From sequence record MW735835.1: a stretch of DNA of 64,000 bases, one strand, 5' to 3'. The position numbers and the translations under genes are program-made. A model generated the notes under the pieces. That model saw only the letters and a list, made by a program, of their open reading frames with translations, searched no databases and was not told the DNA's origin. Positions within the stretch are counted from its first letter, which is position 1, and each line of letters opens with the position of its first letter. Shown piece by piece: positions 57,160-58,459 of the stretch.

Positions 57160-57573
57160 ATGACACCCCTTGACGTTGCAATCCTTGATTTCAAGGAACT
57201 GGTGAAAGTACACCAAGAGCGGACGAACAATCCGAACCCTCCACCTTTGACCCATGAACTGAAGCGGAAGATCGGTGATACCTTGGACCGTATCGCTGAG
57301 TTTGCTGTGGGGTATCAGAAAGACAGCTTGGTCGGATTACCGATCCTGGAGACTGTGGAATCCATGCGCTGTGTCAGACGGGATATCTACGAGCGACTCC
57401 AGGAAGAAGGTATCGAGTACTCCCATGCTGTCTCCAATGGAACCATCGCATGTGTTCTGACGGACAAGGAGACCGGAGCATCCATGCACGTCTCACTGAG
57501 TGATCGATTCGATCATGAGTTGCTCCATCGACTGTCCTGGGAACGGAAGATGGAGTGGGTAAGTCTCCACTGA
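57160..57573 (+). CDS. Hypothetical protein (137 aa)
   Basis: ORF between hairpins; start uncertain (57145 or 57160). Confidence 0.65.
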   Translation: MTPLDVAILDFKELVKVHQERTNNPNPPPLTHELKRKIGDTLDRIAEFAVGYQKDSLVGLPILETVESMRCVRRDIYERLQEEGIEYSHAVSNGTIACVLTDKETGASMHVSLSDRFDHELLHRLSWERKMEWVSLH

Positions 57574-57577
57574 CAGA

Positions 57578-57614
57578 CATAGAGCCTAGGGATCTCCCTA
57601 GGCTCTTTTCTTTT
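57578..57614 (+). terminator. Intrinsic terminator
   Basis: AGAGCCTAGGGA-TC-TCCCTAGGCTCT then TTTCTTTT. Confidence 0.8.
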
Positions 57615-57630
57615 GAATGAAGGGGGTCTG

Positions 57631-57932
57631 TATAGTATGCAAGTCTTGCTCACTTACTCGGGAAGGAAAGAGAAGGGGGTAAGACTAATGACGAACGAAG
57701 TGAGGAATTAGTCTGGGGGATGAGATAGGAAGGGTATAGTCTGCCGTGTTGGTGGCTATCTGGAGGGAGAGGTTACTCGACCGGAGGAGAGACAACACAC
57801 GAGCCCTTCTAGTGAGGCGAAGCCTCACCTTATATAGATTTTGGGATGACGACCCAAGTGATATGGCAATTTTCGTAGAGAAAAACTTTTAGACCTCCGC
57901 CCCAGTCAGCGCAAGCTGACGTTTTTATTTTT
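57631..57932 (+). ncRNA. Candidate non-coding RNA or cis-acting DNA locus
   Basis: ORF-free; TATAGTATG at 57631-57639; several hairpins; ends in GTCAGC-GCAA-GCTGAC plus a T-tract at 57905-57932. Confidence 0.35.
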
Positions 57933-57973
57933 GATGTCTGGATACTGTATAGCTTCGGCAATGGAGAAAACAC

Positions 57974-58459
57974 ATGAACCTGTTTGTATCGTTGGAGGAA
58001 GTGCTTTCTCCGATTGGTGAACCCAAAGCTCCGACTGTGGGCCTGCTGGTCCAAGACTGGGACGAGAACGTCACAGGTGTGGCGGAGCAAGTGGTCAACC
58101 TGGGCTATGGGGTCCAGCTGATCCCGGCGGGGGCGAAGTACTCCCCTGAAGGCATCGGTCACACCACCATGACCAAGAGCGCCAAAGAGAAGACACCCCA
58201 GTCGATCTCTGAACGCCGTGAGGACCATGGGGATGAAGGGGACAACGATGTCCCTGATCCTCGCAACTTCCCGCATCAGCCTCAAGTCCTGTTCTACTAC
58301 AAGGGCAAACCGGAAGATGCCGCAGAAGGAATCCCTGTCCTGGTCGCTGAGGATGGGAAAGTCAAAGTCAGCGTCGAAGGGCGCGTCAAGGAGTTGGCCG
58401 AGTACCTCGGCATGCTCGAGGAGAATGACAATGATCCAGGCGATCATGAATATCGTTGA
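57974..58459 (+). CDS. Hypothetical acidic protein (161 aa)
   Basis: GGAGA SD. Confidence 0.7.
   Translation: MNLFVSLEEVLSPIGEPKAPTVGLLVQDWDENVTGVAEQVVNLGYGVQLIPAGAKYSPEGIGHTTMTKSAKEKTPQSISERREDHGDEGDNDVPDPRNFPHQPQVLFYYKGKPEDAAEGIPVLVAEDGKVKVSVEGRVKELAEYLGMLEENDNDPGDHEYR

Follow-up and report, generated by a model that had tools for sequence, protein, structure and literature searches.

A conserved candidate non-coding RNA with mirror-image purine arms in the Pseudomonas jumbo phage pPa_SNUABM_DT01

To our knowledge, very few non-coding RNAs have been found in nucleus-forming jumbo phages, and none of them has an assigned function. Phages of this kind are used in phage therapy. We likewise know of no purine-motif triple helix or reverse-Hoogsteen hairpin in a natural RNA. 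Synthetic RNA polypurine reverse-Hoogsteen hairpins (PPRH; Ciudad and Noe) bind both single-stranded and double-stranded DNA targets (PMC8466063). Triple helices stabilise natural RNAs, and the known natural ones belong to the pyrimidine motif; the participation of RNA in purine-motif triplexes is contested, in vitro work having found RNA to be excluded (PMC7583470). Here we describe a locus of Pseudomonas phage pPa_SNUABM_DT01 whose mirror-covarying purine arms are new and are explained by no known RNA class.

The DNA analysed (the window, a stretch of 64,000 nt) comes from the genome of this phage (MW735835.1, 265,520 bp), to which it is 100% identical; window coordinates are those of the record minus 62,000. 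The DT01 genome codes for virion and non-virion multisubunit RNA polymerases, a PhuZ-like tubulin and phiKZ-type head proteins, and this combination marks DT01 as a phiKZ-like, presumably nucleus-forming jumbo phage. Judging from sequence, it stands isolated among cultured phages. The 420-aa virion protein adjoining the locus has homologues in 290 GenBank phages, the top match being only 37% identical, and tblastn searches of GenBank phages with both proteins flanking the locus returned only DT01 itself.

No CDS is annotated between positions 57574 and 57973, which form the longest annotated intergenic gap of the window (the runner-up measures 303 nt). The initial annotation, made from the letters of the window, had singled out this gap as the longest and had proposed that it holds a discrete promoter-to-terminator transcript with no protein product or, alternatively, an origin or packaging region. 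All the features that it listed are present where it placed them, among them the terminators on either side, the late-promoter-like TATAGTATG at 57631-57639 and the perfect stem of hairpin 1 (Table 1). The top strand is indeed skewed towards G and A: with 68% purine, the stretch ranks second among the 150-nt windows of the 265.5-kb genome. The reported 24-codon ATG frame exists as well, inside a 32-aa TTG ORF (57613-57711). Some of the listed features carry no weight or are not conserved. The repeated AAGGGGGT is present, but its three copies in the window, against 1.3 expected, are a number that 16 of 100 shuffles reach, and the copy at 57620 is not conserved. Both hairpins noted further downstream are also present, but only that at 57812-57828 is kept in relatives, while TTGGG...CCCAA (57841-57857) is specific to DT01 and not conserved. 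Folded as a single sequence, the + strand has an unremarkable energy (z = -2.2). The initial annotation did not include the features that tell most about the locus: the mirror relation of the purine runs, the invariant loop of hairpin 1 and the existence of a clade without terminator.

Table 1. Features of the DT01 locus (window coordinates)
Feature	Position	Strand	Remarks
Intrinsic terminator of upstream gene PA10_00117	57581..57614	+	12-bp stem and T-tract (hairpin 57581-57606, then T-tract to 57614); insulates the unit
Promoter-like box TCTGTATAGTATG	57627..57639	+	Ends in TATG; G57639 putative start by the phiKZ rule
Pyrimidine-rich 5' leader	57640..57659	+	Possible helix P1: 57642-57651, 57653-57655 and 57657-57659 with 57677-57686, 57673-57675 and 57670-57672
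Purine arm L	57660..57679	+	20 nt, all G/A
Hairpin 1	57682..57714	+	Perfect 8-bp stem (57682-57689/57707-57714) around 17-nt GA-rich loop 57690-57706
Purine-rich arm R	57715..57734	+	Mirror image of L, A to U at two places
Middle domain, irregular long hairpin	57746..57800	+	57746-57751/57796-57800, 57753-57761/57786-57794, 57765-57766/57781-57782
Pyrimidine tract	57803..57810	+	Possible pairing with arm L at its end nearest hairpin 1 (57674-57680)
Hairpin 3	57812..57828	+	7-bp stem, G/A-N-A triloop; three pairs with compensatory changes
3' tail of conserved core	57829..57887	+	Ends with invariant A-run 57881-57885; nhmmer match stops at 57887
Terminator of the RNA	57905..57932	+	6-bp stem, GCAA loop, T-run (57905-57920, then T-run to 57932)
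Second TGTATAG box	57946..57952	+	22 nt before the PA10_00118 ATG (57974)

The element recurs in uncultured relatives. IMG/VR holds contigs of 250-277 kb that carry a homologue of gene 118 (51-54% by the best tblastn segment or 53-64% by full alignment), and in these relatives the upstream gene, PA10_00117, is 20-34% identical. Gene order is kept: a 420-aa virion gene on the minus strand is followed by a gene of about 200 aa, one of about 140 aa, a gap of 340-440 nt free of ORFs and the homologue of gene 118, with one or two unrelated genes (phrog_5043, phrog_23338, a 323-aa ORF) sometimes lying between the gap and that homologue. Across about 250 nt the gaps align far better than the flanking proteins, which are 20-64% identical. 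The synteny search suggested in the initial annotation finds the same sequence of about 250 nt at the same place in about 20 uncultured relatives. In a profile search with nhmmer the core is present at full length in about 20 contigs, with scores of 195-236 bits, and DT01 itself has a single copy (window 57639-57887) and no paralogue of the RNA. Box, core and terminator recur in about 20 relatives, the hairpins show compensatory changes and no ORF is common to the clades; this comparison supports a conserved, structured non-coding RNA with no protein product, and with it the proposal of a discrete promoter-to-terminator unit. The independent clades number only about five.

The distribution of matches indicates that, among phiKZ-like jumbo phages, only the pPa_SNUABM_DT01 clade has the RNA. 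With the RNA as query, BLAST returned DT01 alone from 50,697 GenBank phages and nothing from all complete E. coli genomes. Rfam, which had also been suggested as a check, gave no family match: the whole window contained none at the gathering score (Rfam 15), a search of 57400-58100 at relaxed E-value yielded chance-level matches only, on the upstream terminator, and neither the rest of the genome nor 37 loci with the GA loop of hairpin 1 produced any. ARAGORN found no tRNA or tmRNA in the window, and a literature search for the loop sequence found no match. A pattern scan for the box plus GGGAAGGAA turned up one further, truncated homologue, the remaining matches being due to chance.

Not all parts of the element are equally widespread. 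Clades E and F retain the 3' domain and the G-runs and lack the mirror arms and the GA loop, which are consequently not essential to the family. The DT01 genome also contains a second conserved, structured ORF-free region that is headed by the same box and is not purine-rich. As to the surroundings, the locus lies 3.5 kb from terL and 1.3 kb from a divergent gene boundary. Pfam and PHROGs assigned no function to ten neighbour genes, including those inserted in relatives. The AlphaFold model of gene 118 was unusable (pLDDT 47); that of gene 117 (pLDDT 91) has no fold relative in PDB or BFVD. No partner protein for the RNA was found among the neighbourhood genes.

The late promoters of phiKZ, used by the non-virion RNA polymerase, have the motif T(-3)ATG(+1) with the G as start site (PMC4666361, PMC7598289), and early virion-polymerase promoters look like invariant AT-rich sequences of about 10 nt near -10 (PMC7598289). 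The DT01 box, including TATAGTATG, is invariant across 14 homologues; its TATG (57636-57639) is invariant in clades A-D, and a more distant relative carries TATTGTATG as its box. Since the DT01 box matches the late TATG motif and also the description of the early promoters, it may belong to either temporal class, and G57639 serves only as a working start. In the whole genome TATAGTATG is present just twice, each time at the head of a conserved region without ORFs, and by our own estimate two copies are about the chance expectation for a 9-mer of such composition. Counts of GTATAGT and TGTATAG in the window are likewise at chance level.

A hairpin and T-run stand at the place of the upstream terminator in all relatives. 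The 3' end of the RNA is marked by a hairpin and T-run in clades A and D and by a hairpin followed by TTATGC in clade B, a terminator type described for phiKZ (PMC10914365) and frequent in DT01 too. Past the terminator, clades A, B and D have a second TATAG box, placed about 22 nt ahead of the next ATG, and the second RNA locus of DT01 shares this layout; the TGTATAG box at 57946-57952 is likely a separate promoter of PA10_00118. Clade C has neither a terminator nor a second box, and its core stops 20 nt short of the start codon with which the gene 118 homologue begins, so that in this clade the element would be a 5' leader or 5' UTR.

A Watson-Crick model of the RNA has 96.6% of its cells paired in the 14-sequence alignment, as opposed to 37-48% when the partners are slid. 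Nine pairs are changed on both sides, and the covariation score is reached by none of 500 shuffles; the clear compensatory changes are located in hairpins 1 and 3. Two pairs of the hairpin 1 stem covary (C-G to U-A and A-U to G-C), and its 17-nt loop is invariant except for one N position. We propose that this loop folds as two tandem sheared G.A pairs separated by C-G, followed by A-U, C-G and a GNA triloop. A K-turn reading of the loop is ruled out by the covarying stem, which fixes the register, and a likeness to loop C of 5S rRNA and to the hammerhead core was dropped because the folds do not correspond. The middle domain contains four pairs with double changes and is weak in clade C, and clades E and F have different stems where hairpin 3 sits. 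The long-range helix between 57674-57680 and 57803-57810 is 98% paired, with changes on one side only.

The two purine arms that flank hairpin 1 are related in another way. Running antiparallel through the linker, L and R are identical at 18 of 20 positions in mirror register. Every homologue compared shows this relation: 340 of 346 mirrored cells are G-G, A-A or A(L)-U(R), and all six exceptions to this code are C(L)-U(R); the agreement drops to 57%, 35% and 30% when the register is shifted by one, two and three positions. Four positions switch between G-G and A-A/A-U from clade to clade. Clade B has acquired an 11-nt insertion in each arm, and the insertions mirror each other, while a fifth clade (L309) has another arm sequence, which is mirrored again. 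The mirror score is reached by at most 1 of 500 shuffles, and the 265.5-kb genome holds no second mirror repeat of at least 16/18 within 150 nt. Such position-by-position covariation argues for direct base-to-base contact between the arms, as mirror repeats neither arise by ordinary duplication nor suit a two-fold symmetric protein. By analogy with H-DNA and PPRH, the code (G-G, A-A, A-U) and the confinement of U to one arm are those of the antiparallel purine motif. The mirror covariation therefore suggests an unusual fold of triple-helix type.

A possible third strand is the 5' leader, which is pyrimidine-rich in all clades despite its varying sequence. Its predicted partner in clades A-D is the half of L nearest to hairpin 1, and in the divergent clades E and F it is the first purine run. 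A helix of leader and purines is thus preserved in the divergent clades D, E and F, each time from different sequences. The pairing of 57642-57650 with 57678-57686 is 96.8% paired, again with one-sided changes only. The top of the leader-L helix uses bases of the lower hairpin 1 stem, so that both cannot be fully formed at once. The 72 leader-paired positions of L all (72/72) give C.G*G, U.A*A, U.A*U, U.G*G or G.C*U, a count that is partly circular, two pairing rules having already been imposed; it signifies compatibility with the purine motif, not proof. The lone C in arm L of clade B lies opposite a leader G and an arm R U. The tract 57803-57810 is a possible second partner of arm L.

Taken together, these observations give, in our estimation, about an even chance that the locus encodes a stable and structured non-coding RNA, some 250-295 nt long, that acts in trans and has a triplex-type 5' domain built from the mirror arms. 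A phage RNA polymerase probably transcribes this RNA from the invariant box TCTGTATAGTATG; the transcript would begin at G57639 and end either near 57887 or at the terminator (57932). Arm R would lie antiparallel on the Hoogsteen face of arm L, the Watson-Crick face of which would be taken by the leader or by the tract 57803-57810. The outcome would be a purine-motif triple helix or a reverse-Hoogsteen hairpin, with the tandem-G.A hairpin as its cap. A compact 5' domain of this kind could stabilise the RNA and display the invariant GA hairpin to a partner, and the RNA would act in trans as a scaffold or decoy, not through target pairing. Arm L has no match elsewhere in the phage genome; when G.U pairs are allowed, it matches only the U-rich tails of terminators, which is unspecific. 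A fixed target in trans is also unlikely because L drifts and gains an insertion between clades; the selected feature would be either the L-R contact itself or the template strand of L. Confidence in the triplex model is limited by the doubts in the literature about purine-motif triplexes of RNA (PMC7583470) and by the absence of the arms from clades E and F. Only tentatively would we go further and suggest that no natural RNA before this one had a polypurine clamp or an intramolecular triplex of the purine motif (antiparallel, reverse-Hoogsteen) as its framework, that the clade reserves a dedicated promoter class for two structured RNAs, and that the GA-hairpin cap recurs, on different stems, in unrelated bacteria, archaea and mobile elements.

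The arms could, however, work in cis. The nascent purine-rich RNA would then re-anneal to its own template, arm R or the displaced DNA strand would lock a triplex, and the hybrid would prime replication or mark the genome for packaging. Such an R-loop would account for the drift of L and its insertion without a co-evolving target, and within the phage genome arm L is perfectly complementary to nothing but its own template strand. The promoter directly precedes one of the most purine-rich stretches of the genome, the mirror element is unique there, the position relative to terL and the divergent gene boundary would be suitable, and the mirror code is the same as that of H-DNA (PMC11667243). Nevertheless, cumulative GC skew, proposed earlier as a check, merely follows gene orientation and has no inflection at the locus, iterons are absent (there are only weak two-copy direct repeats) and so is an AT-rich unwinding element; the origin or packaging alternative of the initial annotation thus gains no support. 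About 150 nt of conserved, structured sequence downstream of the arms, the use of the same box ahead of a second structured RNA without purine richness, and the lack of arms in clades E and F fit this explanation poorly, as does clade C, where the transcript runs on into an mRNA that must exit the phage nucleus. We therefore consider cis action unlikely, though a serious candidate. The situation in clade C is, on the other hand, what would be expected of a cis-regulatory 5' leader of PA10_00118 and its homologues, in which a choice between the leader helix and hairpin 1 decides on termination at 57905-57932 or read-through, the short RNA being a by-product. The two mutually exclusive pairings of 57682-57686, both conserved, agree with such a switch, and phiKZ has 17 candidate RNAs derived from 5' UTRs by premature termination (PMC10914365). 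Yet clades A, B and D have a separate TATAG box after the terminator, unrelated genes intervene before the gene 118 homologue in several relatives, Rfam reveals no known riboswitch, and the terminator stem lacks a conserved anti-terminator partner, all of which makes a role as leader rather unlikely.

The remaining alternatives concern the nature of the arms or of the product. With function otherwise as in the trans-acting RNA favoured above, the arms might form a G-quadruplex, within one molecule or in a dimer, and not a triplex. The G5 runs flanking hairpin 1 are invariant, clades E and F still carry the G-runs, as G6, without having the mirror arms, and both arms end in G3 runs. A quadruplex would leave unexplained the mirrored, covarying A positions and isolated G positions, as well as the tolerance of U only in arm R opposite A, and we judge it improbable. 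It is very improbable that the RNA is a sponge for readers of GGA or Shine-Dalgarno-like sequences (RsmA/RsmN or the 30S anti-SD), although it contains 10 GGA and 2 GGAGG and the host has an Rsm system: GGA is not enriched (10 observed against 10.9 expected, with 229 of 300 dinucleotide shuffles at least equal), clade C has seven GGA and no GGAGG, the motif lies mostly in the arms, where mirror pairing accounts for the pattern, and no Rsm family matches in Rfam. A small protein gene hidden in the gap is hardly credible. ORFs of 32-48 aa occur on both strands, but none keeps its frame or borders across clades, indels of 11 nt and 1-5 nt that are not multiples of three break all frames, a Shine-Dalgarno sequence is lacking, and the substitutions observed are compensatory in stems.

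The DT01 locus provides a conserved and well-delimited candidate for a jumbo-phage non-coding RNA, and the same genome offers a second one. Mirror-image covariation of the kind described here is invisible to standard RNA tools, which score Watson-Crick covariation alone. Should the triplex or reverse-Hoogsteen model prove true, it would settle the disputed use of this motif by natural RNA and provide a natural model for synthetic polypurine clamps. Should the RNA instead prove to be locked to its template strand, this would lead to the replication origin or to a genome-marking mechanism of these phages.

The DT01 element belongs to none of the families with which we compared it, although it shares traits with each. 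Like the pRNA of phi29, it is a phage-encoded, structured non-coding RNA, in this case near packaging and virion genes, but there is no likeness in sequence or fold and no Rfam match. As with RNA II of ColE1 and the R-loop primers of T4 oriF/oriG, a promoter is followed by a G-rich structured transcript that would be capable of a persistent hybrid with its template; in contrast to these, the DT01 locus has no origin signal, has a terminator 270 nt downstream and contains a mirror repeat. The ncRNA candidates of phiKZ (Putzeys 2024, PMC10914365) are likewise short and non-coding, belong to nucleus-forming Pseudomonas jumbo phages and are bounded by a phage promoter and a terminator, but they are unrelated in sequence, and the DT01 RNA is larger, more structured and headed by its own invariant box. 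Natural RNA triple helices (the ENE of MALAT1 and PAN, telomerase, SAM-II, preQ1-II) also place an intramolecular third strand in the groove of a helix; theirs are U.A-U and parallel, whereas the one proposed for DT01 is of the purine motif, antiparallel and at the 5' end. In H-DNA and *H-DNA, as in the DT01 element, homopurine stretches form a mirror repeat, and the pairing code is G*G, A*A, T*A (PMC11667243). We do not class it with them, as arm R has 2-6 T interruptions and the spacer measures 35 nt and not a few; moreover, the DT01 element has a promoter and a terminator, the third partner would be part of the same strand, and the conserved structure continues for 150 nt past the arms. Finally, PPRH also consist of two antiparallel polypurine mirror arms joined by a linker. 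One arm of a PPRH offers its Watson-Crick face to a polypyrimidine strand, and one arm of the DT01 element might do the same. Unlike PPRH, the DT01 arms have no external target in the phage genome, and the DT01 element is a natural one, with a structured linker of 35 nt and U opposite A in one arm, set within an RNA of 250 nt.

The invariant GA-rich loop of hairpin 1 also occurs in unrelated bacteria and archaea: exact-match scans found GACGAACGNAGTGAGGAA in at least 120 of their genome contigs and at least 119 metagenome contigs (loci L031-L269). About 70 matches in genome contigs would be expected by chance, according to our estimate. Yet the matches listed fall into 211 distinct contexts, 25% of which flank the loop with a stem of at least 5 bp that differs in sequence, compared with 7% for shuffled pairings; the extra 5' T stands beside the loop in 68% of the contexts. 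Among the same matches, the tip of a rod hairpin of approximately 100 nt is a frequent position of the loop, and several copies adjoin tRNA genes; one MAG carries at least 14 copies inside a MITE-like repeat of approximately 170 nt. No family covering this motif is present in Rfam. Within the window, a 16-nt stretch (ATGACGA...AAGTGA) is 88% identical to the start of the loop region and may represent a decayed duplicate of the GA hairpin module. This near-copy sits in a non-conserved hairpin (57841-57857).

Two more distant relatives (L318 and L320) have neither the GA loop nor mirror arms. They keep the box-like start, the G6 runs and the GCGUAGC mini-hairpins, as well as a hairpin where hairpin 3 would lie; in their predicted fold, every purine run pairs with a pyrimidine run of its own. 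In several relatives, the terminator of the RNA is separated from the gene 118 homologue by the insertion of unrelated genes, either one or two in number (phrog_23338, phrog_5043 or a 323-aa ORF assigned to no family), and each inserted gene is preceded by its own TATAG box. The site immediately 3' of the RNA looks like an insertion hot spot.

Features of the RNA locus, its relatives and the DT01 genome
Feature	Location	Strand
Loop of hairpin 1, GACGAACGNAGTGAGGAA	window 57689-57707	
Near-copy of the loop region start	window 57846-57861 (vs 57688-57703)	
More distant relatives	L318:4440-4752; L320:4470-4722	reverse
Genes inserted between the RNA and the gene 118 homologue	L002:4591-5996; L003:5280-5996; L006:5175-5855; L010:3604-4575	
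Second candidate RNA gene (outside window)	L289:36318-36775 (record 262318-262775)	
Other long unannotated gaps (outside window)	L287:45764-46270; L289:24160-24799; L289:27152-27649	
GATACATTAT motif	window 38753, 39499, 62376, 14082	
Hairpin + TATGCCG	window 38715, 41700, 59288, 63458	+
Hairpin + TATGCCG	window 54130, 43437	-

A second GGTATAGTATG box heads another ORF-free region of the DT01 genome, of approximately 440 nt. The very strong structure of this region (fold z = -6.9), its 3' terminator, its conservation in the same relatives that carry the window RNA and the absence of a match in Rfam, together with the box, make it a candidate for a second RNA gene with the same type of promoter. 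The terminator is followed by TATAG, 22 nt ahead of the next gene, which encodes a DUF488 protein. Among the other long gaps, one, located after a tRNA pair, contains a tRNA-like 3' half (GGGTTCAATTCCCACC...) called neither by Rfam nor in the sequence record; another, of 640 nt, ends with a T-run, and a third resembles an ORF that lacks annotation.

The word with the highest enrichment ahead of genes is GATACATTAT, which follows a T-rich stretch and is distinct from the box of the RNA. Present in 12-19 of 108 upstream regions, versus about one expected, it probably represents the principal class of phage promoters in DT01. Across the genome, TATGCCG recurs directly 3' of GC-rich hairpins. Since this motif contains the late-promoter TATG, terminator and promoter may be fused at such sites. 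The DT01 arrangement is the terminator motif reported for phiKZ, a hairpin plus TTATKYYGT (PMC10914365).
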